IMG/VR virus record: IMGVR_UViG_3300023235_000008
Span: 166,060-230,059 of that record
Direction: 5' to 3' (one strand)
DNA: 64,000 bases
Under the pieces are notes generated by a model. That model was given only the letters and a program-made list of their open reading frames with translations, did no database searches and was not told where the DNA came from. Below are positions 7,545 to 62,687 of this stretch, piece after piece (the first letter of the stretch is position 1; the number at the start of each line of letters is the position of its first letter). The position numbers and the translations under genes are program-made.

Positions 7545-7928
7545 TTATAGTATTGACGTACTGATTTGCTGTGTTTCGCCGTTAAACTGCAATAATAACT
7601 CTTCAGAAAGGTCTAACTCACGATAAAATAACTCTACTTCTACTTGTAACCCAAGCTCATATTCCGTTAGGATTACATTCGATACTTGTGTTCGTGGGTC
7701 GCTGTTGACAATAGTGGTTACATCGTCTACTATAGATTGCTTGACATCTTCGGTCATGGGATCGTATATATGATCCCAAATGATTGTGCCGAAATCAGGA
7801 CGCATTAACTTCTCGCCTTTACGGATTTGAAAATGATTAAGTAAATCACGCTTGATTAACTCTTTATCTTCCAAACGGGTTGACCCAAAGACCGTATCGA
7901 CCGTGTTATAACCTCTATAAAAACTCAT
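7545..7928 (-). CDS. gp25: Baseplate wedge subunit, gp25-like
   Basis: LLNHFQIRKGEKLMRPDFGTIIW...DPR motif; 127 aa. Confidence 0.85.
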   Translation of the reverse strand: MSFYRGYNTVDTVFGSTRLEDKELIKRDLLNHFQIRKGEKLMRPDFGTIIWDHIYDPMTEDVKQSIVDDVTTIVNSDPRTQVSNVILTEYELGLQVEVELFYRELDLSEELLLQFNGETQQISTSIL

Positions 7929-7956
7929 ATTATTATCTCCTTGTGGTATTTAGTCG

Positions 7957-7985
7957 TTGACAATAGGCAATGCTTAATGTATATT
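7957..7985 (+). promoter_or_regulatory. sigma70-type early promoter
   Basis: TTGACA-17-TATATT at the head of the plus-strand early block. Confidence 0.7.
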
Positions 7986-8009
7986 GAACGAAATAGATGG
8001 AGAAATACG

Positions 8010-8171
8010 ATGGCTAAGAAAGTCTACAAGTTTGTAAATCACGACGAGATTCCAGCAATCACCGCCGAATATGTATTAAGCGTTGCTGATGCTGATAGCA
8101 TCTGGTCCATACCTATTGACGAAATCAATGAGTTCCTTAACGACTTGGAAGAATATGATGGATTATCGTAA
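8010..8171 (+). CDS. Hypothetical early protein
   Basis: GGAG RBS then MAKKVYKFVNH; first gene after the promoter. Confidence 0.55.
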   Translation: MAKKVYKFVNHDEIPAITAEYVLSVADADSIWSIPIDEINEFLNDLEEYDGLS

Positions 8172-8685
8172 AAGTGGGTCAACATGTACGCATTCCAATT
8201 GGGATGGTAAATGGTATAGTTCGTCACATACAGTAAGTATTGACAAACTGCGGAATCACCAAGGGGATACTCTACCAGATTGGGAACGCCTTATCATAAT
8301 GAAAGAAGTTCTATCACCAGAACAATATGAGTTCAATAAAAATTTCGACGGATTTGCCCATTTAACAGATACAGAAATGCGTAATATATCTATGCGTTCG
8401 TTCCCAACATTACGTTCTGAAGTATTTCAATGGTTGCGTGAAAATGTTGCGGATTCAACCGATATCAATCGCAAAGACCGACCAGAAGGATGGTGCATTG
8501 GTTCAGCCGAATATCGTGTAAGTGGCGCATCGGGTTACCTAACCATCTGGTTTTTACGGCGTCTTGATGCAATGAAGTTTATCAAAAAGTGGAGTGTTTA
8601 CAATCAGCCAGAAGAATACTCGAATGATGACGGTATGTGGAAACGTCTTATTGACGGCATACTTGTAGATGTAGAGCAAAACTGA
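8158..8685 (+). CDS. Hypothetical protein, paralog of 8685-9200
   Basis: Shares FPTLRSEVFQWLRENVADSTDINRKDRPEGWCIG with the next gene. Confidence 0.7.
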   Translation: MDYRKSGSTCTHSNWDGKWYSSSHTVSIDKLRNHQGDTLPDWERLIIMKEVLSPEQYEFNKNFDGFAHLTDTEMRNISMRSFPTLRSEVFQWLRENVADSTDINRKDRPEGWCIGSAEYRVSGASGYLTIWFLRRLDAMKFIKKWSVYNQPEEYSNDDGMWKRLIDGILVDVEQN

Positions 8686-38961: not shown

Positions 38962-40788
38962 ATGGCTAGACAAAAATATTTAAACAACAGAGACTTATTA
39001 CGTCAAATACACCTAAGTAAGAACACATATTGTTCATTCGTAGACGATTATTTCAAAGATTATGATATCATCCTACCATCAATTGACAGGATCAACATCC
39101 GAACAATCGCCGAAGCAAAAAGAAATCGTGCGGATCGTCTTCAGAAAAATCAGTTTCATATAGCAAAGAAAGCTGGTGAAACCGTCAAGTTAAGTGATTT
39201 TGAACTATTAAACTGGAAAAAGATTCCAAAACAAGATGTGGTATTTCGTGTCCATACCTTTGACCATATTCCCGAAGAACCGGGTCGTAAGAAAAATCCT
39301 AAATCAGTAGCAGACCGGCACGTGCGATTATATTTCCCGCCGTTTGCACATTATTCATTTAATGATGATAATGAACTTATTATGGTAGGAAAATCGCATT
39401 GGGAAGGCGGAATGGATAATGGATATTTCAAGGAAGATCGTGGACGAATGACCGATGAACTTGGTCGTATGTTTATGAAACTGTGCGAACGCTATGGTTC
39501 AAGATATAACTGGCGCGGATATTGTGTCGATGAAAAAACGGAAGCGTTGACACAACGAGGGTGGTTGGGAATAAACGAAATCACCGATCACGATACCATT
39601 CTATCGTATACCGACAACAAGCTAACGTGGTCATCCATTAAATCAATATTCAGAGATGATTTTGATGGAAAAATGTTCAAGATGACAGTTCGCGGGATGG
39701 ATGCATTAGTAACTCCTCGCCATAAATTTATTACCGACTCTGGGTTAAAAGAAGTTGAATACATTTTGGAAAAAGATAAAATTATTTTAACTGGTGAGCC
39801 AGTAGAAGATGGCGAAAGCATTCACAGCGATGCATTCGTTGAACTCATCGGTTGGATTGTTACTGAGGGAAATTTCTATAACGATAAATCACGAAATTAT
39901 ACCAGAATATCTGTGTATCAAAACGAAGGCACTCACGCTGATAGAATTCGTGAATGTCTACATTCACTAAATGCTGGTTTTTCAGAAAGTATACTCGATA
40001 AATTGATTTCTTTCACATTAAACAAAGACATATGCAATAAAGTAAATGATGTGATAACAGATAAAGTCCTGCCAATGGATTTTATTTTATCATTAACACA
40101 AAAACAGAGATCACTTCTCATCGATACCATGATTGATGGGGATGGATGGATTAGAAGTGGCAACATGAAAAGCTATTGTCAGAAGGATAAGAAACACGTC
40201 GATAGTTTCTTAGCGCTATGTACTATTGCTGGCATCAGAACAACTCATAAGTTGAATGAAATCACATCATTTGGAAAACCAACGACTATATTCAATGTGA
40301 ATTTATTATCAGAAAAGAAAAATGTAACTCGCATGGAGAATGTAAACTTATATGAGGGTAAACGAAGTGGTAGCGGAAGAAGCAAAGTGCATCATCCAAA
40401 TGAACCAACTGTAGATTATCATGGGAAAGTATGGTGCCCGGAAACTGAGTACGGGTCGTTCATGGCACGTAGGAATGGCACAATTTATCTAACAGGAAAC
40501 ACATATAACGATGAAATGCAACAACAAGCGTTAATGCAGCTTTCACAGGTTGGACTTCAGTTCGACGAAAGTAAATCACAAAATCCATTTGCGTATTATA
40601 CCGCAATAATTAACGCTTCATTTACGAGAGTTTTAAATATCGAAAAACGTGGTCAAAATATACGGGATGATATTCTTGAAATGAACGGATTGACCCCAAG
40701 TTACACCCGACAAGCGTTGGCACAGCCAGATCAATGGCAAGCAGCAACTGATATAACCAAGGCGGGAAATAAGCCAAAGAAGAAATAA
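38962..40788 (+). CDS. gp55: Late-transcription sigma factor (gp55-like) with intein
   Basis: KYLNNRDLL, YNWRGY|TYNDEMQQQALMQLSQVGLQFDESKSQNPFAYYT; upstream of gp47. Confidence 0.8.
   Translation: MARQKYLNNRDLLRQIHLSKNTYCSFVDDYFKDYDIILPSIDRINIRTIAEAKRNRADRLQKNQFHIAKKAGETVKLSDFELLNWKKIPKQDVVFRVHTFDHIPEEPGRKKNPKSVADRHVRLYFPPFAHYSFNDDNELIMVGKSHWEGGMDNGYFKEDRGRMTDELGRMFMKLCERYGSRYNWRGYCVDEKTEALTQRGWLGINEITDHDTILSYTDNKLTWSSIKSIFRDDFDGKMFKMTVRGMDALVTPRHKFITDSGLKEVEYILEKDKIILTGEPVEDGESIHSDAFVELIGWIVTEGNFYNDKSRNYTRISVYQNEGTHADRIRECLHSLNAGFSESILDKLISFTLNKDICNKVNDVITDKVLPMDFILSLTQKQRSLLIDTMIDGDGWIRSGNMKSYCQKDKKHVDSFLALCTIAGIRTTHKLNEITSFGKPTTIFNVNLLSEKKNVTRMENVNLYEGKRSGSGRSKVHHPNEPTVDYHGKVWCPETEYGSFMARRNGTIYLTGNTYNDEMQQQALMQLSQVGLQFDESKSQNPFAYYTAIINASFTRVLNIEKRGQNIRDDILEMNGLTPSYTRQALAQPDQWQAATDITKAGNKPKKK
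39523..40500 (+). mobile_element. Intein (326 aa) with LAGLIDADG-type endonuclease
   Basis: C1 (CVDEKTEALT), VTPRH block B, LIGWIVTEG and MIDGDG, ends TGN|T. Confidence 0.85.
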
Positions 40789-42444
40789 TTATTTTTCCCA
40801 TATCCACACATTATTACCGCAATCCCAGAACCGATTGAATTTCAAGAACTTCATTATTTCCCACTCAGACCCCAAATAATGAAGTTCTTGTGGTAATTTA
40901 TGCTTTTGATATTTTATTCTACTTTCTACATTAAGTCCTTTGAAATACCAATAGTTAGGTTTAGAAGAATGGCTTTTCACGAATCCTAGATTAGAATAAA
41001 AATCCCCTTCTCCCCAAGACAAGTTCGCGTAACTAACTACTGATTTAAAATCATATGTGTTACACGCGAATTTGAATAATTTCGACCCCGCGCCTTGAAC
41101 ATTGTATCCATTCTTAGATGCAAATCTAAGCATCTCGTATTCATATTTTTTAGAATAACGAGTTCGCACAAATGTCATAACCGATACCAACTCATTATTA
41201 TGCATCAACCCTAATGAATATTTTGCATTAGCACTGCCTTGTAAGTGATTATTATTTAAGAACTCAGATGCTATTTTATTATCAATTATACTAATCGTGG
41301 TCTTTCGTGCGCCTATGCTGATTTGTGATTTTGATAATGCCGATCCAATCCTTGAAAATACAATATCAGATTTATGCTCCAATTCGTGTTCAAATACGTG
41401 CAATAACGTAATTCCAAGTTGCATACACTTTTTATGTTTAGATAAATGATACGATCTATCTTGATTGACTACTTCCGAATGCCAGTATAATCCGTTATAT
41501 TCAATAGCTACTTTTTGGTCTGGGCAATAAAAATCTAACTCACTTGGTCCAATAATTGTGCGATCTTGGTGGATGTATTTTATCTTTTGTTTATTCAAAT
41601 ATTGTCTGATTTTATATTCACCTACAGACTCGGTTTTAGGATGGCATATATAACATCGTGCGTTTAGTCCCGGTAGTATAGGTTGAGAAAATATATGATC
41701 GCATTGTTTACATTGCCAGTTAAATGACGCATCTGCTTGGGCGGTAGCATATTCGTTCATATCAAATAACGGAGTAGCGTTATCACGTATTTGAATGACA
41801 TCATTATATATACTGGACTTCAGCGTGATAGTTGTTTTTTTTGAAATCTCTGAATTTTGCGCAGGACGCGGGCTACCATATCTATCCTCAAATACATCAC
41901 ATGTCTTATCATAGATATTCTTGTTTTGCTGCGGGAACGAAACGCCATGATTTTCATAACAGGTATGTTGGGATTTGTGTTGGATGTCTACATTCATCAT
42001 AGGCGATACACTACCGTATCTATCAATACACGTTTTGGCAGCTTTGCGCTTTGTGGTGGATGTTTGACTAGCGAAGTCGCATCCATATACAATGTTATTT
42101 GTTGCTTTTCGTTTTTTAATTATATTAAGTTTCTCATCGTGCGATTTAGATTTTCGTTTAGTATCGGCATTCAACTTATTACATACGCATGTAGATTGAT
42201 TACCGCAATAATTCATGAAGCCCTTAGAAAGAGATAAAAAACGCTTAGGAACACCTTCGCCGCAGTTTACTGATTTTTCATTAATATCATTCAAGTACAT
42301 ATAGAATTTACCCATCATTGGTATAGATAAATCGCAATACAAGTTCAGTTCAGTTTGTAAGGTAGTATTTGTAGATAGCATTCTGCTTAATTTGATGGTT
42401 GATATATTTCCATCTCGGTATAGTTTAAGTATTTCTTGTAGCAT
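40789..42444 (-). mobile_element. Free-standing homing endonuclease (Hef/Vsr-like)
   Basis: ELDFY..AIEYNGLYWH..HVFEHE..FLNNNHLQG..RFWDCG; opposite strand, between gp55 and gp47. Confidence 0.75.
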
Positions 42445-48975: not shown

Positions 48976-49428
48976 ATGGACACAGGACACTGGGAATACC
49001 CTAACGACTTCGACCCCTCTGAATGGTTTGGATTTATATATCGTATTATCGAAAAAGATACACAAAAAATGTATATCGGTAAAAAACAATTCCAATCTAT
49101 TCGGAGGGTCAAAGTTAAAAATCGCAAGAACCGTAAAATAGTTCGTAAAGAAAGTGACTGGAAAACTTATACAAGTTCGTCTACCCACTTAAATGCAGCA
49201 ATAGAAGAAAACGGCATTGATAACTACCAGTTCATTATTGAGTCATTACATGAAACAAAAGGATCAATGTATTACCGTGAAGTAGAACTTCAAATAAAAG
49301 AAGATGTTTTACTTAAAGAACTTGACAATGGTACACCAATGTACTATAATAAGCAGGTAGGATCGGTTAGATTTATTCCGCCAAAACCTACACTTAAAGA
49401 ACAAAAATTTTATAACACAAAAATTTAG
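48976..49428 (+). CDS. GIY-YIG family endonuclease
   Basis: GFIY...YIGKK, YTSSS; preceded by TATAAATA 48964-71. Confidence 0.7.
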   Translation: MDTGHWEYPNDFDPSEWFGFIYRIIEKDTQKMYIGKKQFQSIRRVKVKNRKNRKIVRKESDWKTYTSSSTHLNAAIEENGIDNYQFIIESLHETKGSMYYREVELQIKEDVLLKELDNGTPMYYNKQVGSVRFIPPKPTLKEQKFYNTKI

Positions 49429-50271: not shown

Positions 50272-51096
50272 TTATATGTTTGGATATTTTACGTCTTTTG
50301 CATCAGCTGCGTGGAATAATGGCCACATATCTTTACTTGATGGACCAGTTTGCCATTTTCCATCCTTTGTCTTTTTAGACCACATCTGACCTTCCCACTT
50401 GAAGATATTACCATTATGAGATAATAAAGTTCCTTTAGGGATTTCACGTGGTCTAGAAGGTTTAGGTGTTTCTTCTGGTTGTGCGTTAGGTGTTTCTTCT
50501 GATTGTGCATTATATTTTGCGTTGAGATATTCTTCAGCTTTCTTTGCAATATAAGCCTTCATGCCATCAATATTCTCAACTTCATTATCAAAGTCTCCGA
50601 TGCCTACGCCTTTAACTCCACCAATAATGCCATTCATAAAGTTCTTGAAAATTTCAAGTGTTTTAGAATCCTCTACTGCTTCATCTTTCGTGGCATTGAC
50701 ATAGTAATCTTCCCATTTCTTAGCAAATAATCTTGCAAGTTTAGGCGCATCTTTCTTGATGTTCTTCTTGCGTGTTCTGAATTCATCCGCAGAAAGATTA
50801 TTATTGGTACTTTGTTGTGGGGTGGTATCAGTTTGTTGTTGCGGAAAGAAACGTCTGAATTCGCTACTTGTTCCATCCATTCGCTGCAATAAATCGGTAT
50901 ATTCATTACCAGCTGCGGTCATTAACTTGACTAATATAGCTGTGTCGGATGATCCAAGGTTACCAAAAGCAGATTGTTTAAGTAGTGCATATGCTTTTTT
51001 AGAGCCTTTACCACCATTGCCAAGCTTATTGATAAGCTTTTCATCATCGGGTTTCGGTCCAGTTCCTGCTTCGAATATTAATTCACGATATTTCAT
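50272..51096 (-). CDS. Late hypothetical (virion-type) protein
   Basis: MKYRELIFEA start typical of phage head proteins; upstream ATAAATA. Confidence 0.65.
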   Translation of the reverse strand: MKYRELIFEAGTGPKPDDEKLINKLGNGGKGSKKAYALLKQSAFGNLGSSDTAILVKLMTAAGNEYTDLLQRMDGTSSEFRRFFPQQQTDTTPQQSTNNNLSADEFRTRKKNIKKDAPKLARLFAKKWEDYYVNATKDEAVEDSKTLEIFKNFMNGIIGGVKGVGIGDFDNEVENIDGMKAYIAKKAEEYLNAKYNAQSEETPNAQPEETPKPSRPREIPKGTLLSHNGNIFKWEGQMWSKKTKDGKWQTGPSSKDMWPLFHAADAKDVKYPNI

Positions 51097-51107
51097 ATAC
51101 GTATTTA

Positions 51108-51340
51108 TTAAATAAACGGCATTTGTGTTTCTTTGGTTGCTTCCATATTCGATTGAATGATTTCAGAAATTAATGCACGATCCTTCGGCGGCATAATATA
51201 TACCTCATTAAGCGTGACACCGCCACGCATCCACCAGCATATTGTCAGGAGTTCTTTTCGTAAGGCTTCCACATTTTTATCGTAACTGTCTAGTAACTTT
51301 ACGATATCCTGATTATTGAGCGATAGAAGCCTTACCCGAA
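51108..51340 (-). CDS. -1 frame extension of the upstream chaperone gene (gpT-like)
   Basis: RVRLLSLNNQDIVKLL..ICWWMRGGVTLNE..ETQMPFI; no ATG/RBS at its head; entered through T TTT TTC. Confidence 0.65.
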
Positions 51341-52180
51341 AAAATTTGATGCCTCGAATTCAAGCGGTGCAGTATATTCGTGCTTACAATCCATACAAGT
51401 TAGATTTAATGGGTTTAACTCCATTTGTTTGCGGAACACCGTAAGAATATTTTCAATCATTTCATATGAACGCTTATCCGTATTAGTTACGAATTCAAAT
51501 ATATGTTTACGATCAATAACTTCAGTTCCATCAGGCATTACAATCTTATCAATGAAATTGCTCGTGATATCCATGGATAAGTTACTAATATTACTAAGAT
51601 AATCAGCATAAAGTTTATTTTTACGCTCATCATCCATTGTATTATCTGGATTATCGAGCAATGTCAATAAACGCTGTTCTTCGAACGTCTGCATACTGAC
51701 TTTATTAAGCTGACTAAACATCTGCGGTTTGAAATATATTTTCAAATCTTTGACCATATGCGGTTCTGAGAAATCGATGTGTCTTTTTTGATCAAGCATG
51801 ATGCGTAAATCGATTGCAAACTTATTTTCTTCTTTGCAGCTAGGGCAAATACTAGTGAAATCCATTTCTTCGCCATACGTGGCAATACGGATAGCAATAA
51901 GGATAGAATCGATGTCGGTAGTAGGCACACCCGCAGCATCTTTGATTTGCGGAATGCAACTTTGAATAACTTGTCTTGTTGCTGATCCATTCATAAGTGA
52001 ATCGGGCGTGTTTAGCGCAATTTCATCCCGTGCTGTCATAGGCATAACCGCGACTTCGGTTGAACCTTCCTCCAATTCAAGTGCACCGGGCGAATAATGC
52101 TCGCCTTTCGACGGCAAGTCTAAAAAAAGTGCTGGTGTTCGAAAATGTCCAGAAAGTGGGTTAGTATTAGGGGTTTCCAT
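51332..52180 (-). CDS. gp26: Baseplate hub/tail assembly chaperone (T4 gp26/gp51-like)
   Basis: NPLSGHFR.P...MTARDE..PD.LMNG..AIRIATYG, CxxC twice. Confidence 0.75.
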   Translation of the reverse strand: METPNTNPLSGHFRTPALFLDLPSKGEHYSPGALELEEGSTEVAVMPMTARDEIALNTPDSLMNGSATRQVIQSCIPQIKDAAGVPTTDIDSILIAIRIATYGEEMDFTSICPSCKEENKFAIDLRIMLDQKRHIDFSEPHMVKDLKIYFKPQMFSQLNKVSMQTFEEQRLLTLLDNPDNTMDDERKNKLYADYLSNISNLSMDITSNFIDKIVMPDGTEVIDRKHIFEFVTNTDKRSYEMIENILTVFRKQMELNPLNLTCMDCKHEYTAPLEFEASNFFG

Positions 52181-52191
52181 TAATTTCTCCG

Positions 52192-52199
52192 TATAAATA
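52192..52199 (+). promoter_or_regulatory. T4-type late promoter TATAAATA (others at 54546, 48964, 18726; GATAAATA at 57523, 57813)
   Basis: Recurrent motif just upstream of structural genes. Confidence 0.7.
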
Positions 52200-52250
52200 C
52201 AATATAGTAGTGTGTTATTTATTGCACTAATTAACTTGGTATATAATTAT

Positions 52251-54542
52251 ATGAATGATCAGCAAGTACAAACCTTATTAAATACATTGAATGGTCTACC
52301 TGACCGCATTGTTAATGCAATGCAATCTGGTGGCACTCCCGGTGGCGGAAGCGGTGCGCCCGGAACACGTGATGGCGATAATGGTGCTGGTAATGCAGCC
52401 GCTGATTTAGAAAAAGCGATGCGTGATGCACAAAAAGGAACCAAGGGGTTACTCGGCGCATTCCATCAAGGCACGAAAGATTTATCACAGGACTTCGACC
52501 AGCTTGGGTCTAGCATGGATAGCGCATCATCGGCGATGGCTGACGGTTCCGGTGCGATCACCGCATCGTATAAAGCCATAACATCAACGGGTGGTGCGGT
52601 TGCATCATCGCTTTCGACAATGAAAGACGGTTTTATTGAAAATACCGAAATGGGTAGAAGGTTTGGTGAAAGACTAAAGGACAGCGATGGTAAATTAACT
52701 GGTTTTGGTAAGAGTTTAAAAGTCGCATCGATTGGTCTAACGCTTCTTTCTGGTATAGTCGGTTTTGTTGTTAGTCAACTTGGTGGAACATATGATGCAT
52801 TCAGAGATATGTCGTCGGCAGGTGCTACTTTCGGATCGTCGCTTTTGGGATTACGAGAAAGCGCAACCGCTAGTGGTCTTGGACTTAAAGAATTCACCAA
52901 ATATGTAACAACTAACGTTAAAGTATTGACACAACTAGGCGGAAGTGCATCGGGCGGCGCAAAGGCACTGGCAGAAGTTGGTAAAGAGATAAGAGATCAG
53001 GGTCTTACTCAATCATTTCGGGCAATGGGTATTAGTGCTAAAGAACAGTTAGAGGTATCGCAGGATTATATGCGTGTTGTTCAGATGACGGGATATTCAC
53101 AATCCCATTCTACTGCCGATGTTGCTAAGAAAAGTTTAGATTATGCCAAATCTTTGAAAATGCTAGGTGAACTAACGGGGGAGTCTGTCGAGGAACAGCG
53201 TAAAAACCAAGAAGCCCTTGCTATGGATACCGCATTCCGTGCTAAAATGCGGGGGATGAGTGCAGATGAAATCGCCAACTTTAAAGCGATGGAAGCGACC
53301 ATGAAAGCACAATTCGGCGACGTGGGTTCGCAAATGGCGAAGGAAATCATCGTTACAGGTAACGTTGCGAGTGAGGCAACTGCAACATTAGCAGCATTTT
53401 CGCCAGCTGCGACCCAACTTATGGATACGATGATGGCATCGCAAGGAAAAACTGCTAAAGAGTTTGCAGCGGCAATGCCGGGAATATTAAAAGGCATCGA
53501 AGGACAACTAAAAGAAGACCTTGATAATATGGCTGAGACTGCGATGCTAACAATTTACGGAAAAGAAGGTCCGATGGGAACACTTGATAAAATCTTTGTT
53601 CCTATGTCGGATGCTGCCGAAAGATTATCTAAAATGTCAGTTGAACAACTGGCAGAATCTAATGCTAATCTTGGAAAAGGCGGAGCGGCAATGGATGCAG
53701 CCGTAAAGGCGGCTGAAGCATTTGAAAAATTAATGGTTAAATTGCGTGAAGTTGGAACGGAGCTTTTTGAAAAAATATTCACCGCCGATAATGTTAGTGG
53801 TATGATTAGCTTCATTGATGGTATAAAGAATTTTGAACTAGGGTCTTGGGCTAAACTAATAACCGCTGTTGGAGTTCTTGGTGCTGCCTTTGTTGGATTG
53901 CCGATGATAATTTCAGGCATGGCGGCTAAAGCTATGATGGGCGGAATGGGCGGCGGAATGGGCGGCAGAATGGGCGGTCGTGGTAAATTTGGTAAACTTA
54001 AAAGTTTAGCAAAGGGTGCTTTTGGTCTTGGTCGTGCTGTCCTTGGAGGAACTGCTGCCGCTGGTGCTGCCGGTGCTGCTGGTGCTGCGGGGGCGGGTGC
54101 CGCTGGTGCCGGTGCTGGTGCCGGTGCTGGTGCTGCTGGTGCTGCGGCTAAAATAATAGGTGGCAAAATGCTTGCCAAAATCATACCGGGCGCCGCCGCT
54201 GCTTTTGCCATAAAAGACTTCATGGAAGGTGACTACACCGGGGCATTGCTAAACACTGCTGCCGCTGGTGCTAGTTTCATTCCCGGTGTAGGTACTGCGG
54301 CTGCACTCGGATTATCTGGTATTGATGCTATTCGAGAATCATTTTTCAATGACGATGAGGGTGCAGCAATCGCCGAGCAAAAGAAGGTGGCTGAAAACCA
54401 ATTGATAAGTCAATCTGCCCAAGAAAACTCACAGATGGATGTGCCTACCTTGATGGCCAAGTTGGTGACAATCCAAGAGGCAACTCTGCGACTACAACGT
54501 GAAGCCACCGACCACTTAGAAAATATCAAAAACGAGGTCTAA
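52251..54542 (+). CDS. Tape-measure-like protein
   Basis: Ala/Gly-rich and helical; GA low-complexity tract near 54055-54145; divergent from the chaperone gene. Confidence 0.65.
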   Translation: MNDQQVQTLLNTLNGLPDRIVNAMQSGGTPGGGSGAPGTRDGDNGAGNAAADLEKAMRDAQKGTKGLLGAFHQGTKDLSQDFDQLGSSMDSASSAMADGSGAITASYKAITSTGGAVASSLSTMKDGFIENTEMGRRFGERLKDSDGKLTGFGKSLKVASIGLTLLSGIVGFVVSQLGGTYDAFRDMSSAGATFGSSLLGLRESATASGLGLKEFTKYVTTNVKVLTQLGGSASGGAKALAEVGKEIRDQGLTQSFRAMGISAKEQLEVSQDYMRVVQMTGYSQSHSTADVAKKSLDYAKSLKMLGELTGESVEEQRKNQEALAMDTAFRAKMRGMSADEIANFKAMEATMKAQFGDVGSQMAKEIIVTGNVASEATATLAAFSPAATQLMDTMMASQGKTAKEFAAAMPGILKGIEGQLKEDLDNMAETAMLTIYGKEGPMGTLDKIFVPMSDAAERLSKMSVEQLAESNANLGKGGAAMDAAVKAAEAFEKLMVKLREVGTELFEKIFTADNVSGMISFIDGIKNFELGSWAKLITAVGVLGAAFVGLPMIISGMAAKAMMGGMGGGMGGRMGGRGKFGKLKSLAKGAFGLGRAVLGGTAAAGAAGAAGAAGAGAAGAGAGAGAGAAGAAAKIIGGKMLAKIIPGAAAAFAIKDFMEGDYTGALLNTAAAGASFIPGVGTAAALGLSGIDAIRESFFNDDEGAAIAEQKKVAENQLISQSAQENSQMDVPTLMAKLVTIQEATLRLQREATDHLENIKNEV

Positions 54543-54574
54543 ACATATAAATAACCCTATAGATAGGAAACAAT

Positions 54575-57517
54575 ATGAGTTGGCGTAAACACTTTAGAAC
54601 AGCAAATGCAAGCCCCCTTACTAATAATAGTCGGGGCAATGATTCATTTTCGCATAACAACTGGGCTTCCCAGTTACCAGAGGTTTATATTGGTCACCCA
54701 AATAGGGTCGAGCGATATGCCCAATATGAGAATATGGATAACGACAGTGAAGTAAACGCCGCACTGGATATTATCGCCGAGTTTTGTACACAAAAGAATG
54801 GTGATAACGGAACAGGGTTCGATATTCATTTTTATGAAGAAGCAACAGATTCTGAAATCAAGATTCTAAAAGAAGCCCTTATTAACTGGTGGAAAATTAA
54901 TAAATTCGAAACACGTTTGTTTAAAGCATTCCGTAATACTATTAAATATGGCGATCAAGTCTTTATCCGTGACCCCGATACACTAGAATGGTTCTGGGTT
55001 AATATGGAAGATGTCATTAAAGTAATCGTTAATGAAGGCGAAGGCAAAGCACCCGAGCAATACGTGGTTAGAAACATCAATCCAAACTTCGAAAGCTTAA
55101 CAGCAACGCAACGAACACACCAAGATCAAGTAGCTGGACAGACATCAAGCGGAACATCCGTTAATCAAAGCTACCAACAATCAAGTGCAGCAAATGGTAG
55201 CAGTGGTGGATCACGATTTGAAAATCAAATCAATGAATTCGCAGTCGATGCTGAACATATTGTTCATTGTTCACTAACCGAAGGCATGGATGTATCTTGG
55301 CCATTTGGTAATAGTATTTTGGAACGTATTTTCAAGGTATATAAACAAAAAGAACTACTAGAAGACGCACTTCTTATCTATCGTATCCAACGTGCACCTG
55401 AACGCCGAGTATTCAAAGTAGATGTTGGTAATATGCCATCACATATGGCTATGGCGTTTGTTGAGCGTGTGAAAAACGAAATTCACCAGAAGCGTCTGCC
55501 GTCACAAAGCGGTGGAAACAATATGATGGATGCTACATATAATCCACTATGTTTAGATTTGAGTACCAGAATTCCGTTATTGGATGGTAGGACGCTATCA
55601 CTTAATCATATTATTGATGAATTTAATGAAGGTAAGGAAAATTGGGTTTATTCTACTAATCCAGAAAATGGCGAAATAGTTCCCGGTCCAGTATCATGGG
55701 CTGGTATTACCAGAGAGAATGCGGAAGTAGTTAAATTAACTTTTGATAACGGCGAGACATTGACATGTACCCCCGATCATAAAATTCCAGTATTAGGAAA
55801 AGGATTTGTTAGTGCATCCGAACTAACTGCCGATGATAGTTTAATTTCACATAATACACAACAAACACCCATTACGACTGGAAAAAAACATAAAGATAAA
55901 ACATATACACAGGTGTTTGATCATAACAAGAAAAACTGGATTTATGTTCATAGAATGGTTGCTAATTTTATGAAGAATAAAACTCTTCATGAAGAGTTTA
56001 CATACTTGGACGAAAATATAAATTTATCTAAAAATACCATTCATCATAAGGATTATACAAGAAATAACAATAATCCAAGTAACTTATGCTTTATGAATAA
56101 AGAAGATCATATTAAGTTTCATAGTGAAAATAATTTCTGGAATGTTGTGTCAGATGCCGAGGCAGCACGTATCAAAAATAAGATATCTATTAAAACCAAA
56201 CGTAACTGGGATAATATGAATTCTATTGATAAAGCTGTGGCAGTTAATGATATGCGAACTATTCAACAGAAAGCAGTATGGATGCGCAAAAATGATCCTG
56301 AAACTAAGGCATCTTATGCCAAAAATATGTCTGCATCTCAAAAAATACGCATGAAAGAAAATCCAAAGGCATTAGCGCAATTACTCAAAAATGCTGAAAA
56401 TAGAGTTCCGTTTAATAATCAAGAGATGGTTTTAACACAGCAAATGTTAGGCAGAGTTGTTAGTATTATAGTAAAAAATAATACCACCACAAAAACTGAA
56501 GTTTTAAAGTTATGCGATGCTGATTCCATATTAATGAATATGTTTAGAGATGCTAATCCCAAAACAAAAAGATTATGTAAAATTGATTTTGACAAATGGG
56601 GATATAGTAAAATGGACAAACTTATAACCCAAGAAGGTTATAGTAATTGGAAAGATTTTACTAAAAAAGTTAGTCAATATAACCATAAAGTAGTGTCAAT
56701 TGAGTATTTGGAAGAGACAATGGATGTTGGCACGATTACAGTTGATGGACTAGAAGAATATCATAACTATCATACTTTTGCTATTGATGCCGGAATATAT
56801 GTTAAGAATTCAACAAATGAAGATTATTTCTTCCCCGTAACATCGGATGGTCGTGGTTCATCGGTTGATGTTCTACCGGGTGGACAAAATCTCGGTGAAA
56901 TTAATGATTTGCTTTACTTTAATAATAAATTATTGCGTGGATTACGTATACCGTCATCATATCTACCTACGGGACCAGACGAAGGTTCGCAAACATACAA
57001 TGATGGTCGTATGGGAACCGCATTGATTCAAGAAAAGACGTTCAATGACTACTGTATTCGTCTTCAAAATATGCTTGCACCATCATTTGACCAAGAGTTT
57101 AAGGTATTTTTACAAGAACGTGGATACAATATTGATAACTCAATCTTTGATTTACGTTTCAATGAACCACAAAACTTCTCAGCGTATCGTGAAGTAGAAG
57201 TAGATAGCAACCGTATCGGAACATTTACACAGCTTCTTGAAGTGCAGGGAATGTCATTGCGTTTCTTACAAAAGCGTTATCTTGGTCTTTCAGAAGAAGA
57301 AATGCAAGAAAATGACCGTATGTGGCGTGAAGAAAACGTCGAGTCTGAAGCAACACCTGTAACTGGCGACAGTATGCGTGGGCTTGGTATGAGTCCGGGT
57401 GGATTTAATGCTGATATGGACATTGCAGACCCTGATCAACCAGACTTTGGCGGTGATGAAATGGGCGAGATGGGTGGACCAGAAGGCGACGACATGGATG
57501 CTGACCTAGAATTGTAA
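54575..57517 (+). CDS. gp20: Portal protein with intein
   Basis: LLEDALLIYRIQRAPERRVFKVDVGNMP, EDYFFP, LPGGQNLGEI. Confidence 0.9.
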   Translation: MSWRKHFRTANASPLTNNSRGNDSFSHNNWASQLPEVYIGHPNRVERYAQYENMDNDSEVNAALDIIAEFCTQKNGDNGTGFDIHFYEEATDSEIKILKEALINWWKINKFETRLFKAFRNTIKYGDQVFIRDPDTLEWFWVNMEDVIKVIVNEGEGKAPEQYVVRNINPNFESLTATQRTHQDQVAGQTSSGTSVNQSYQQSSAANGSSGGSRFENQINEFAVDAEHIVHCSLTEGMDVSWPFGNSILERIFKVYKQKELLEDALLIYRIQRAPERRVFKVDVGNMPSHMAMAFVERVKNEIHQKRLPSQSGGNNMMDATYNPLCLDLSTRIPLLDGRTLSLNHIIDEFNEGKENWVYSTNPENGEIVPGPVSWAGITRENAEVVKLTFDNGETLTCTPDHKIPVLGKGFVSASELTADDSLISHNTQQTPITTGKKHKDKTYTQVFDHNKKNWIYVHRMVANFMKNKTLHEEFTYLDENINLSKNTIHHKDYTRNNNNPSNLCFMNKEDHIKFHSENNFWNVVSDAEAARIKNKISIKTKRNWDNMNSIDKAVAVNDMRTIQQKAVWMRKNDPETKASYAKNMSASQKIRMKENPKALAQLLKNAENRVPFNNQEMVLTQQMLGRVVSIIVKNNTTTKTEVLKLCDADSILMNMFRDANPKTKRLCKIDFDKWGYSKMDKLITQEGYSNWKDFTKKVSQYNHKVVSIEYLEETMDVGTITVDGLEEYHNYHTFAIDAGIYVKNSTNEDYFFPVTSDGRGSSVDVLPGGQNLGEINDLLYFNNKLLRGLRIPSSYLPTGPDEGSQTYNDGRMGTALIQEKTFNDYCIRLQNMLAPSFDQEFKVFLQERGYNIDNSIFDLRFNEPQNFSAYREVEVDSNRIGTFTQLLEVQGMSLRFLQKRYLGLSEEEMQENDRMWREENVESEATPVTGDSMRGLGMSPGGFNADMDIADPDQPDFGGDEMGEMGGPEGDDMDADLEL
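55550..56809 (+). mobile_element. Intein (420 aa) with HNH-type endonuclease
   Basis: C1 (CLDLSTRIPL), CTPDHK, HRMVA..IHHKD..NNPSNL, ends VKN|S. Confidence 0.85.
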
Positions 57518-61895: not shown

Positions 61896-62687
61896 ATGAA
61901 ACATTTTATCTATAAGACAACACATACAAACGGCAAATACTACATTGGTAGACATTCAACAAACAATATAGAAGACGGCTACTTAGGATCAGGTAAATGG
62001 GTCAGGGGCATCATTGATAAGTCTTCTTTATCCCGTGAAGTAATTCAGGAATACGATACCTTTGAAGACCTCATAGACGCAGAAGAGCAGTTTCTTATAG
62101 AACACATCCATAATCCCCAATGTATGAATATGACTGCACAATCTATCGGTTTCGTCACTGGTGGCAACAACCCTATGAAGGACCCTGATATAGCATCTAA
62201 AATATCAGGAGATAATCATTATTCAAGAACTAATCCCGAAAAAGTATCTCGTGGCGACAAACACTGGATGAATACCAATCCAGAAGCACGAGATACTTTC
62301 GTTGATAATCACCCTATGAAAACAGATGATAACAGGCAAAGGCAATCTGTGCGTAGAACGCAACGAAACTATGATAATAATCCTTCTGTGAAAAGTGCCA
62401 AAGAAGGTAAACATCATTGGCAGAATGGTAAGTCCCCGAATGCTGGTGGTAAGTTGAATAAAAAGTTGATTGAAGAAGGTCGGCATAACTTCCAAGGACC
62501 TGAGCATAATCGCCGCATGATTGAAGAAGGTAAAAATCCATGGGTGGGTGCTACACAAAATGAAAAGATGTTATCTACTGGAACTCATCCATCACAAACA
62601 AGATTAGTGTGTGAGCATTGTGGTTTAGAAACTGCTAAGGGTATGTACGCACGTTGGCACGGCGATAACTGTAAGACAAAAACATAA
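61896..62687 (+). mobile_element. GIY-YIG homing endonuclease (Seg-like)
   Basis: FIYKT..YYIGRH..DGYLGSG; NUMOD-like repeats; C-terminal CEHC..HGDNC. Confidence 0.8.

Follow-up and report, generated by a model that had tools for sequence, protein, structure and literature searches.

The stretch of DNA that we analyzed (the window; 64,000 nucleotides, positions 166,060 to 230,059 of IMG/VR record IMGVR_UViG_3300023235_000008) comes from a giant phage of a salt lake. On its minus strand the window carries a gene for a gp26-like protein that ends AAT TTT TTC GGG TAA, whose last codons contain the heptamer T TTT TTC and beyond which the -1 frame remains open. Table 1 lists the features of the locus. 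The gene product matches the Pfam family PF12322 (T4_baseplate) with an E value of 5.4e-19 and 69.2 bits, against a cut-off of 24.5, over profile positions 9-211 of 219, and matches phrog_150 with an E value of 3.5e-25. It is the only PF12322 gene in the 230-kb record, and its AF2 model has a pLDDT of 90.4. Note that the divergent neighbor is only tape-measure-like: its RaK2 ortholog, ORF088, is noted as 'similar to ... tail tape measure protein' and the nearest named ESM-Atlas feature clusters are TMP_3 and PhageMin_Tail (score 0.93), but BLASTP of the 776-aa protein against T4 gp29 showed no similarity.

Table 1 Features at the gp26-like locus (positions are those of the window)
Position	Strand	Feature	Description
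51332..52180	-	0-frame ORF, short product	gp26-like hub assembly protein, 282 aa; four invariant Cys (C112, C115, C262, C265)
51338..51344	-	Slippery heptamer T TTT TTC	0-frame codons AAT TTT TTC; one codon before the 0-frame stop
51332..51334	-	0-frame stop TAA	Overlaps -1 frame codons 2 and 3 (GTA AGG)
51108..51338	-	-1 frame extension	76 codons (RVRLLSL...QMPFI) plus stop TAA at 51110..51108; joined to residues 1-281 gives a predicted long product of 357 aa
51323..51335	-	5' arm of predicted stimulatory stem	GUAAGGCUUCUAU; begins 2 nt after the heptamer
51260..51272	-	3' arm of predicted stimulatory stem	GUGGAAGCCUUAC; 13 pairs with the 5' arm (11 Watson-Crick, 2 G-U); 50-nt loop between the arms carries a further hairpin in the MFE fold
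52212..54542	+	Divergent neighbor	776-aa tape-measure-like protein; real start probably at codon 14

The initial annotation had proposed that this arrangement is a programmed -1 frameshift in the style of lambda G/GT, and its observation of the heptamer and of the open -1 frame proved correct, with exact coordinates. (The initial annotation had also placed the tape-measure-like gene adjacent to the gp26-like gene, which is so, although the two are divergently transcribed and the former does not lie downstream on the same strand.) To determine whether the arrangement could have arisen by chance, we examined 80 related IMG/VR loci, the products of which are only 37-45% identical in protein. All 80 carry T TTT TTC in frame and followed by G, and in the 75 loci that are not cut by a contig end the -1 ORF is 75-77 codons long and conserved as protein. 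The site is also present in 16 cultured phages, 15 of which carry the identical heptamer whereas Melnitz carries T TTT TTT; these include Phosso, XaC1, Atu_ph07, RaK2, Turkey5, PHA46, Serratia BF, the cyanophage P-SSM2, OLIVR5, AsFcp_4, LPCS28 and PhiW-14. The slip site sits in all 97 single-gene relatives examined, and it is not peculiar to jumbo myoviruses, as the initial annotation had implied, but occurs in RaK2-type jumbo phages, cyanophages, Pootjesviridae, Ionavirus and some Straboviridae (two among the cultured phages). In relatives the 0-frame stop lies 0-14 codons after the heptamer. A protein-level need for Phe-Phe alone would allow four codon pairs and any preceding third base, and relatives that lack the extension (T4-type gp26) use non-slippery codons and do not keep even the Phe-Phe. 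(A megablast search of the region against GenBank phages found nothing.)

Selection on the -1 frame begins at the heptamer. In particular, the 0-frame codon that follows TTC is GNN with N free (encoding Gly, Glu, Val, Ala or Asp), and in the -1 frame this is always CGN, encoding Arg. An alignment of 71 orthologous extensions has a mean column identity of 60%, and the AF2 model of the extension in the window is a four-helix domain with a pLDDT of 87.6. No start codon in the -1 frame is conserved: the first one falls anywhere from codon 1 to codon 46, and one truncated locus has none in view. In the window the first ATG, GTG or TTG in that frame is the GTG at 51272, 22 codons in. In the protein database the extension is absent as a called gene, apart from the window's own 54-aa ORF that starts at this GTG. 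The initial annotation had stated that its proposal would fail if orthologs lacked the slippery site and the downstream ORF had its own start, for example this GTG; orthologs keep the site, and the GTG is not conserved and lies inside the 3' arm of the predicted stem.

To test whether an RNA structure accompanies the slip site, we used RNA folding and a duplex search. A stem with a family-wide conserved core, AGGCU, begins at +6, about 5 nt after the heptamer. The 5' arm comes in several sequence classes (AGGCUUUUGA, CGCCUCCUGA, AGGCUCUUAAC, AGGCUUCUGAG), each of which is matched by its exact complement 40-60 nt downstream. The median duplex energy was -14.8 kcal/mol when a 5' arm was paired with its own partner, -7.1 kcal/mol with foreign partners and about -6 kcal/mol for control arms, and 68 of 73 sequences beat the median foreign partner. 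The fold of positions +1 to +90 has a mean z of -2.98. Moreover, pair types alternate at several positions, for example GC/CG at +8, UA/CG at +11 and +12, and GC/AU at +14, and P-SSM2, OLIVR5, Phosso and Atu_ph07 also have strong hairpins that start 5-8 nt downstream, with z from -4 to -6. Note that RNAalifold returned no structure on the ungapped alignment, because the 3' arm slides by whole codons between lineages, and that a simple ungapped pair count was much less discriminating (9.0 paired positions with the own partner and 8.0 with foreign ones); the support for the stem, which is computational only, therefore comes from the per-sequence duplex search with foreign-partner controls. TATAAATA is not enriched in the window.

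The initial annotation had remarked that such frameshifts are not described for T4 gp26, and the frameshift is indeed absent from T4 gene 26, but T4 is not without the long form. T4 gp51, the 'hub assembly catalyst', is itself a PF12322 protein, with a match at an E value of 3.9e-52 over residues 1-201 and a match to phrog_150 over positions 13-280 of 282. In a MAFFT alignment the frameshift products are colinear with five in-frame gp51 proteins through the junction to the end, whereas T4-type gp26 stops 3 residues after the junction. The small ORFs that are annotated as 'gp51' after gp26 in P-SSM2, Melnitz and OLIVR5 are all in the -1 frame and hit phrog_634, as does the tail of T4 gp51. T4 has two PF12322 genes and no slippery heptamer is present in T4-type 26 and 51, whereas P-SSM2, AsFcp_4, LPCS28, RaK2 and the record that contains the window each have one PF12322 gene. 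On a tree, T4-type gp26 and gp51 together form one clade (96/96) apart from all frameshift-type genes, although the root of this tree is only a midpoint. The similarity in sequence between the jumbo-type extension and the T4-type gp51 tail is weak, with hhalign E values of 1.2e-3 at 19.5% probability and 4.9e-3 at 7%, both in the expected register. The extension profile gave no significant match to T4 gp51 alone, where the alignment fell in a different part of gp51, or to the P-SSM2 tail alone, and only 1 of the 71 extensions touched phrog_634, at an E value of 0.01; the extension in the window did not. The equivalence of the extension and the gp51 tail therefore rests mainly on position and colinearity.

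We next asked whether the gp26-like protein resembles known tail assembly chaperones. Pfam found only PF12322 and no chaperone family. Foldseek of the gp26-like model against the PDB gave a best E value of 0.5, and a VIA-wide comparison gave a best Z of 6.7 that covers only a helical hairpin; YqbN (3klu), with a Z of 6.3 at an rmsd of 7.0, is only a weak lead. A profile search of PDB sequences also found nothing. A search of BFVD with the extension model returned only small uncharacterized phage proteins at E values of 0.01 or weaker; a 'tape measure chaperone' of phage Moogle appeared at an E value of 0.86, which is not significant. Prediction of a complex between residues 77-776 of the tape-measure-like protein and the gp26-like protein gave a score of 0.00, below the mark, which is not evidence for or against binding. 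Thus the fold matches no solved tail assembly chaperone, and the idea in the initial annotation that this family is the tape-measure chaperone is plausible but remains an inference. (At least one GenBank record, that of phage Stupor, already labels gp26, gp51 and gp28 'tape measure protein assembly chaperone', so the idea has precedent.) Taken as a whole, the interpretation in the initial annotation is supported in part: the comparative evidence strongly supports a programmed frameshift that extends a gp26-like protein, but not the restriction to jumbo myoviruses, and does not establish the chaperone role.

With high confidence, we consider the gene to be the single-gene form of the T4 gene 26/gene 51 pair, which most likely makes a gp26-like short form and a gp51-like long form. 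In this view, most ribosomes would terminate one codon after Phe-Phe and make the 282-aa protein, whereas a fraction would slip back one base on T TTT TTC, where both tRNA-Phe can re-pair on UUU UUU. The slip would probably be promoted by the stop codon next to the site and by the stable stem a few bases downstream, and these ribosomes would read 76 more codons to make a 357-aa form with a small helical C-terminal domain that would correspond to the C-terminal tail of T4 gp51. Leiman et al. 2010 (PMC3004832) list gp26 and gp51 as hub assembly chaperones, state that gp51 is required but absent from the particle, and cite Snustad 1968 on catalytic versus stoichiometric gene products. By analogy with T4, both forms would be non-virion assembly factors for the baseplate hub, which is built around the tape-measure protein; the short form would be abundant and the long form scarce, with the ratio fixed by frameshift efficiency, as for lambda gpG and gpGT. 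The site, the conserved trans-frame peptide, the covarying stem, and the correspondence between one gene with a slip site and two genes without one rest directly on sequence and comparison. That the slip is ribosomal, its efficiency, the production of the joined protein, the chaperone role, its client and any binding to the tape-measure protein are inferred (no RNA run holds the region).

We entertained the idea that the downstream ORF is an independent small gene for a free gp51-like peptide, translated from its own start or by reinitiation coupled to termination at the gp26 stop, and never joined to gp26. GenBank records annotate it in this way, as gp51 in P-SSM2, Melnitz and OLIVR5 and as 'hypothetical protein' in Phosso, Turkey5, PHA46, Serratia BF and PhiW-14. 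In addition, an ATG overlaps the stop (ATGA) in Phosso and Atu_ph07 and follows it in P-SSM2, such that separate initiation could contribute in those phages, and the window has its internal GTG. However, the peptide is conserved upstream of every candidate start, right back to the Arg codon that overlaps the heptamer, the heptamer itself is conserved at the nucleotide level although its codons could vary, and in T4-type phages the colinear, putatively homologous tail is covalently part of a PF12322 protein. Together with the lack of a conserved start and the position of the GTG within the stem, these findings make an independent gene very unlikely.

Slippage by RNA polymerase on the T6 run, which would add one U to part of the mRNAs, would give an identical product (N F F R...), and a homopolymer run is present in every ortholog. 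We consider this about equally unlikely, as six residues is short for efficient bacterial transcriptional slippage, which usually needs about 8-9 or more, and the run is never longer than 6-7 in 96 sequences. Moreover, the X XXY YYZ phase is strictly kept, and a conserved, covarying stem placed 5-6 nt after the site is the signature of ribosomal -1 frameshifting and has no role in polymerase slippage. Homopolymer runs are also error-prone and in-frame long forms do exist (T4-type gp51), which raised the possibility of a sequencing or assembly error, or of a recent frameshift mutation, in what is really a single 357-aa ORF. The comparative data refute this: the same interruption appears in the 80 metagenomic relatives and in the 16 cultured phages, which were sequenced by many laboratories, the top 120 of 2105 database homologs are all 274-310 aa with none of about 357 aa, and contigs from four further, independent salt-lake runs cover the site with the same run of six T and no base change or indel.

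A broader reading, which we consider somewhat more likely than not, is that the lambda G/GT logic extends to the whole T4-like superfamily through an unrelated protein family. Ancestrally, one PF12322 gene would have made both forms by a -1 frameshift at T TTT TTC, and core Straboviridae, T4 included, would later have replaced recoding with two paralogous genes; because the tree is rooted only at its midpoint, this direction is an inference. If true, this would explain why the model phage seemed to lack the 'universal' chaperone frameshift and why gp51 acts in catalytic amounts, and it would identify gp26/gp51 as the chaperone pair of the tape-measure protein gp29. We found no annotation and, in full-text literature searches, no paper describing a frameshift in gp26 or gp51, although prior mention in subscription journals cannot be excluded. 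Thousands of T4-like, cyanophage and jumbo-phage genomes annotate this locus as 'baseplate hub' plus an orphan mini-ORF, or leave the extension unannotated, and a single recoding rule (T TTT TTC at the gp26 end) would correct them. The model, which cultured carriers of the site (RaK2, Atu_ph07, LPCS28 and P-SSM2) make directly testable, also gives a concrete meaning to two of the least understood T4 tail genes, with gp26 as the abundant short form and gp51 as the scarce long form of one chaperone. The conserved tail-chaperone frameshift would extend to the best-studied group of contractile-tailed phages through a protein family unrelated to gpG, a case of convergent expression logic, and the contrast between one gene with a slip site and two genes without one is a natural experiment in how programmed frameshifting can be replaced by gene duplication.

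Like the site described here, the E. coli dnaX tau/gamma frameshift is a bacterial-type -1 slip on a homopolymeric X XXY YYZ heptamer, stimulated by a stem-loop a few nucleotides downstream. In dnaX, however, the slip shortens the product and uses an upstream Shine-Dalgarno-like stimulator, whereas here the slip would lengthen the product and no conserved upstream element of this kind was seen. With lambda gpG/gpGT, and the conserved -1 frameshift reportedly found in tail assembly chaperone genes of long-tailed phages (Xu, Hendrix & Duda 2004, listed among the references of PMC9024508), the locus shares two predicted nested products with a common N-terminus, a slip on an X XXY YYZ heptamer at the very end of the short ORF, and a tail-assembly gene next to the tape-measure-like gene; the products are expected to be absent from the virion and the long form to be the minor species. 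It differs in that no sequence or fold relationship to gpG-type chaperones was found, the protein is larger and has a four-Cys motif, the gene is divergent from the tape-measure-like gene and is not placed between the tube and tape-measure genes, the heptamer is T TTT TTC rather than G GGA AAG and has a long covarying downstream stem, and the client is not established. The cyanophage 'gp51' mini-ORFs (for example, P-SSM2 PSSM2_015; phrog_634) have the same position immediately after gp26, the same -1 frame, the same heptamer at the gp26 end and the same tail motif, but are annotated as free-standing genes of 46-57 aa that start at an internal ATG, and are shorter than the 76-codon extension here. 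T4-type phages encode the two forms as two paralogous, divergently oriented genes without a slippery site, whereas here there is one gene plus inferred recoding; the jumbo-type domain is about 70 aa longer, and the jumbo-type extension carries an extra stretch of about 14 aa. The 0-frame product is nevertheless a PF12322 member like both T4 proteins, the gene sits next to hub and tail genes as in T4, the short form ends where gp26 ends, and the predicted long form is colinear with gp51, including the ...P.ER... tail motif.

To characterize the gp26-like gene we first examined its reading frames. The minus-strand ORF encodes 282 aa and ends AAT TTT TTC GGG TAA, the slippery heptamer being T TTT TTC, and from the heptamer the -1 frame reads FFRVRLLSLNNQDIVKLLDSYDKNVEALRKELLTICWWMRGGVTLNEVYIMPPKDRALISEIIQSNMEATKETQMPFI before it reaches a stop codon (coordinates are listed in the table). 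The only canonical start in that frame is a GTG that lies 22 codons in. The 0-frame product is a member of Pfam PF12322 T4_baseplate (E 5.4e-19, 69.2 bits against a cut-off of 24.5) and of phrog_150 'baseplate hub', whereas the extension hits no Pfam or PHROG family. The 274-aa ORF directly downstream of the extension likewise has no Pfam or PHROG match; in RaK2 and XaC1 an endonuclease VII gene is found a little further downstream of the extension.

The window is the last 64 kb of a 230-kb viral contig found in salt-lake metagenomes, and it carries T4-type late genes, namely those for a portal, a prohead protease and a major capsid protein, for gp5-, gp25- and gp6-like baseplate proteins, for gp46/47-like nuclease subunits, and for a gp55-like late sigma factor. 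Note that two of these genes appear to be interrupted. The portal-like ORF is 980 aa and is matched by the portal profile in two stretches, with HNH-endonuclease hits at about aa 445-535 in between, which looks like an intein or an inserted homing-endonuclease domain. The gp55-like protein is 608 aa but is matched by sigma profiles only at aa 1-191 and 514-598, which implies an insert of about 320 aa that may be an intein. Three free-standing homing/HNH endonuclease genes are, moreover, scattered among the structural and recombination genes. The T4 late-promoter consensus, TATAAATA, sits just upstream of both the tape-measure-like gene and the portal gene, although the motif is not enriched in the window as a whole (8 found against 7.1 expected).

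Coordinates of the features examined in the window and in the T4 record
Sequence	Position	Strand	Feature
Window	52180..51332	-	gp26-like ORF (0 frame)
Window	51344..51338	-	heptamer T TTT TTC
Window	51110..51108	-	stop of the -1 frame
Window	51272	-	GTG in the -1 frame
Window	51335..51323	-	5' arm of the predicted stem
Window	51272..51260	-	3' arm of the predicted stem
Window	51328-51363		36 nt around the slip site matched by a second kind of contig
Window	50272-51096	-	ORF directly downstream of the extension
Window	38962-40788	+	gp55-like late sigma factor
Window	40789-42444	-	free-standing homing/HNH endonuclease gene
Window	48976-49428	+	free-standing homing/HNH endonuclease gene
Window	61896-62687	+	free-standing homing/HNH endonuclease gene
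Window	52192-52199	+	late-promoter consensus upstream of the tape-measure-like gene
Window	54546-54553	+	late-promoter consensus upstream of the portal gene
Window	54575-57517	+	portal-like ORF
T4	7803-8429		T4 gp26 locus

To determine whether the arrangement is more than chance or error, we searched for relatives of the gene. A tblastn search found it in 98 GenBank phages, all below 36% identity, including RaK2-type jumbo phages, Atu_ph07, Phosso and XaC1. In the first four records examined, the gene ends with in-frame T TTT TTC and the -1 frame then continues with a related peptide (FFR.[RQ]LL...), while the 0 frame stops 1-14 codons later. A word-index protein search found 2105 homologs, the top 120 of which are all 274-310 aa, so that none of these is a 357-aa in-frame fusion. 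In an alignment of 30 of them the C-terminal FF is invariant, and the next residue is Gly, Ala or Val, all encoded by G-initial codons. The extension is not in that database as a called protein, apart from the window's own 54-aa GTG ORF.

We next compared 80 related IMG/VR loci, which are 37-45% identical apart from the window's own contig. All 80 carry T TTT TTC followed by G, in phase, and in every locus not cut by a contig end the -1 ORF is 75-77 codons. The consensus peptide is FFR.RLLTL...CWYMRGG..Y.EA..LS..ER.II..IIKENLETTKKSGLPFF, with a mean column identity of 60%. The 0-frame codon after TTC is GNN with both N free, and therefore codes Gly, Glu, Val, Ala or Asp in frame 0 but always Arg (CGN) in frame -1. 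The first ATG/GTG/TTG in the -1 frame falls anywhere from codon 1 to codon 46. In addition, contigs from four further salt-lake runs cover the site without any difference. In three independent salt-lake runs a second kind of contig matches only 36 nt around the slip site, with 2 differences, and diverges on both sides; a related co-occurring phage shares the nucleotide-conserved slip region. The initial annotation had reported a heptamer at the end of this gene followed by an open -1 frame, and that observation holds; chance, sequencing error and pseudogenisation are excluded.

The nucleotides just after the site are unusually conserved (G..t.aGgCTctTgAc), and we therefore asked whether they contribute to an RNA structure. 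Folding of +1..+90 gave a mean z of -2.98 against dinucleotide shuffles, with 70% of sequences falling below -2. A duplex search revealed a predicted stem whose 5' arm begins at +6 and falls into sequence classes, each matched 40-60 nt downstream by its exact complement: AGGCUUUUGA is paired with UCAAAAGCCU, CGCCUCCUGA with AGGAGGCG-type arms, AGGCUCUUAAC with GUUAAGAGCCU, and AGGCUUCUGAG with CUCAGAAGCC. The median energy with a sequence's own partner is -14.8 kcal/mol, compared with -7.1 when the arm is offered the downstream region of a sequence whose arm differs at 3 or more positions, and about -6 for control arms elsewhere in the same sequences; 68 of 73 sequences beat the median foreign partner. 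Moreover, pair types alternate at several positions (GC/CG at +8, UA/CG at +11 and +12, and GC/AU at +14). These controls support a real, co-evolving pair of arms. In the window the stem is 13 bp and encloses a further hairpin, and its 3' arm contains the GTG that might otherwise serve as a start. Phosso and Atu_ph07 have the same design (z -4.0 and -6.0), and P-SSM2 and OLIVR5 have compact hairpins starting at +6 to +8 (z -4.0 and -5.3), whereas RaK2, XaC1, AsFcp_4 and LPCS28 show nothing significant. A heptamer, a short spacer and a covarying stem together are the classical anatomy of bacterial -1 ribosomal frameshifting.

In an attempt to identify the extension, we used T4 gp26 as a tblastn query, which led to distant T4-like phages. 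In P-SSM2, Melnitz and OLIVR5 the gene after gp26 is a mini-ORF annotated 'gp51, baseplate hub assembly catalyst', and PhiW-14 has a 'hypothetical protein' in the same place; all four mini-ORFs are in the -1 frame of gp26. All six distant phages checked have the heptamer 0-2 codons before the gp26 stop (as T TTT TTT in Melnitz), and two of these, AsFcp_4 and LPCS28, are Straboviridae in which the stretch is unannotated. In all six the -1 frame is open from the heptamer for 55-65 codons and carries the motif ..E[LI]E...P.ER..Y... T4 gp51 (249 aa) is itself a PF12322 protein (E 3.9e-52 over residues 1-201; phrog_150 13-280/282), and its last ~50 residues (from 199) lie within its match (residues 147-246) to phrog_634, the family of the cyanophage mini-ORFs. 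In a MAFFT alignment the conceptual frameshift products of 11 phages, the window included, align colinearly with the in-frame gp51 of T4, Stupor, PspYZU05, avDM4 and Skers through the junction ([FVIL]F[RKE].[LIV]L) to the ...P.ER... tail, whereas the gp26 of those five phages stops three residues after the junction. Note that although the jumbo-type and RaK2-type extensions are clearly homologous to each other (hhalign E 1.5e-13), their similarity to T4-type tails is weak, if always in the expected register (E 1.2e-3 and 4.9e-3).

Further support for the equivalence of one gene with two came from the number of PF12322 copies per genome, which is two in T4 (26 and 51) and one in P-SSM2, AsFcp_4, LPCS28, RaK2 and the window's own record. 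T4-type 26 and 51 have no slippery heptamer and the FF itself is relaxed there, which suggests that the FF invariance elsewhere owes much to the slip site. On a maximum-likelihood tree, for which only a midpoint root was used, the T4-type gp26 and gp51 together form a clade (96/96), with gp51 monophyletic (100/100), that is separate from all frameshift-type genes and lies next to the two frameshift-type Straboviridae. The simplest reading is that one gene with a frameshift is ancestral, and that a duplication in core Straboviridae replaced it. The T4-type gp26 proteins of T4, Stupor, PspYZU05 and Skers end FFELL, FVEVL, FFKLM and FLKIL, and these endings resemble the F-K-L-L continuation of the long form rather than the 0-frame tails of frameshift-type genes (ending G, D or xSxS). 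This hints that an already in-frame long gene was duplicated and that one copy was then truncated.

AlphaFold2 gave a confident model of the 282-aa protein (pLDDT 90.4, pTM 0.84) and a four-helix model of the extension (pLDDT 87.6), the two parts of the joined 357-aa product being analysed separately. No solved structure was found to resemble the predicted gp26-like fold: the best Foldseek hit has E 0.5, the best VIA hit has Z 6.7 over a helical hairpin only, and no PDB sequence relative was found. Thus, as far as these tests reach, the protein is not a member of the known tail assembly chaperone folds. VIA does list B. subtilis YqbN (3klu_A) against residues 1-104 of the model, at Z 6.3 and rmsd 7.0 over 90 residues. 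YqbN belongs to the XkdN-like family of myophage tail assembly chaperones, and although the match is too weak to use, it is a lead for a remote link between gp26 and known chaperones. In BFVD the fold recurs in 'baseplate hub' proteins of very diverse myophages, including Bacillus SP-15, Campylobacter CP220, Ralstonia phiRSL1, Ackermannviridae and others.

T4 genetics, as summarised by Leiman et al. 2010 (PMC3004832), lists gp26 and gp51 as hub assembly chaperones, with gp51 required but absent from the particle, and Snustad 1968 is cited there on catalytic versus stoichiometric action. A scarce frameshift product would fit a 'catalytic' gp51. The hub contains the tape-measure protein gp29, and the divergent neighbour of the gene here is tape-measure-like. 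Furthermore, the record of Acinetobacter phage Stupor (MN662249) already names gp26, gp51 and gp28 'tape measure protein assembly chaperone', although the source of that naming was not found in the searchable literature. The interpretation offered in the initial annotation, that of a programmed -1 frameshift in the chaperone of the tape-measure protein, is thus supported in part: the frameshift is backed by the comparative data, whereas the chaperone role, on which a complex prediction gave no verdict, is only an inference, if a reasonable one with precedent. All of the evidence is comparative and computational, and the efficiency of frameshifting, the client protein and the direction of evolution are inferred.

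We entertained the idea that the extension is produced by separate initiation or by reinitiation. This is contradicted by conservation upstream of every possible start and by the invariant heptamer, the absence of which from orthologs, together with an own start for the downstream ORF, had been proposed beforehand as grounds for rejecting the frameshift, but separate initiation or reinitiation could still add to expression in phages with ATGA overlaps. Transcriptional slippage would give the same protein; however, it is unlikely on a run of six and does not explain the stem. That the interruption is an artefact is excluded.

None of the 20 GenBank records inspected annotates ribosomal slippage at this gene, and full-text literature searches found no paper linking gp26 or gp51 with frameshifting, although prior mention cannot be excluded. 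When compared to the recoding of G/GT, which is already known, what appears to be new here is recoding of that type in an unrelated, widely distributed family of putative chaperones, together with a proposed evolutionary explanation for genes 26 and 51 of T4.
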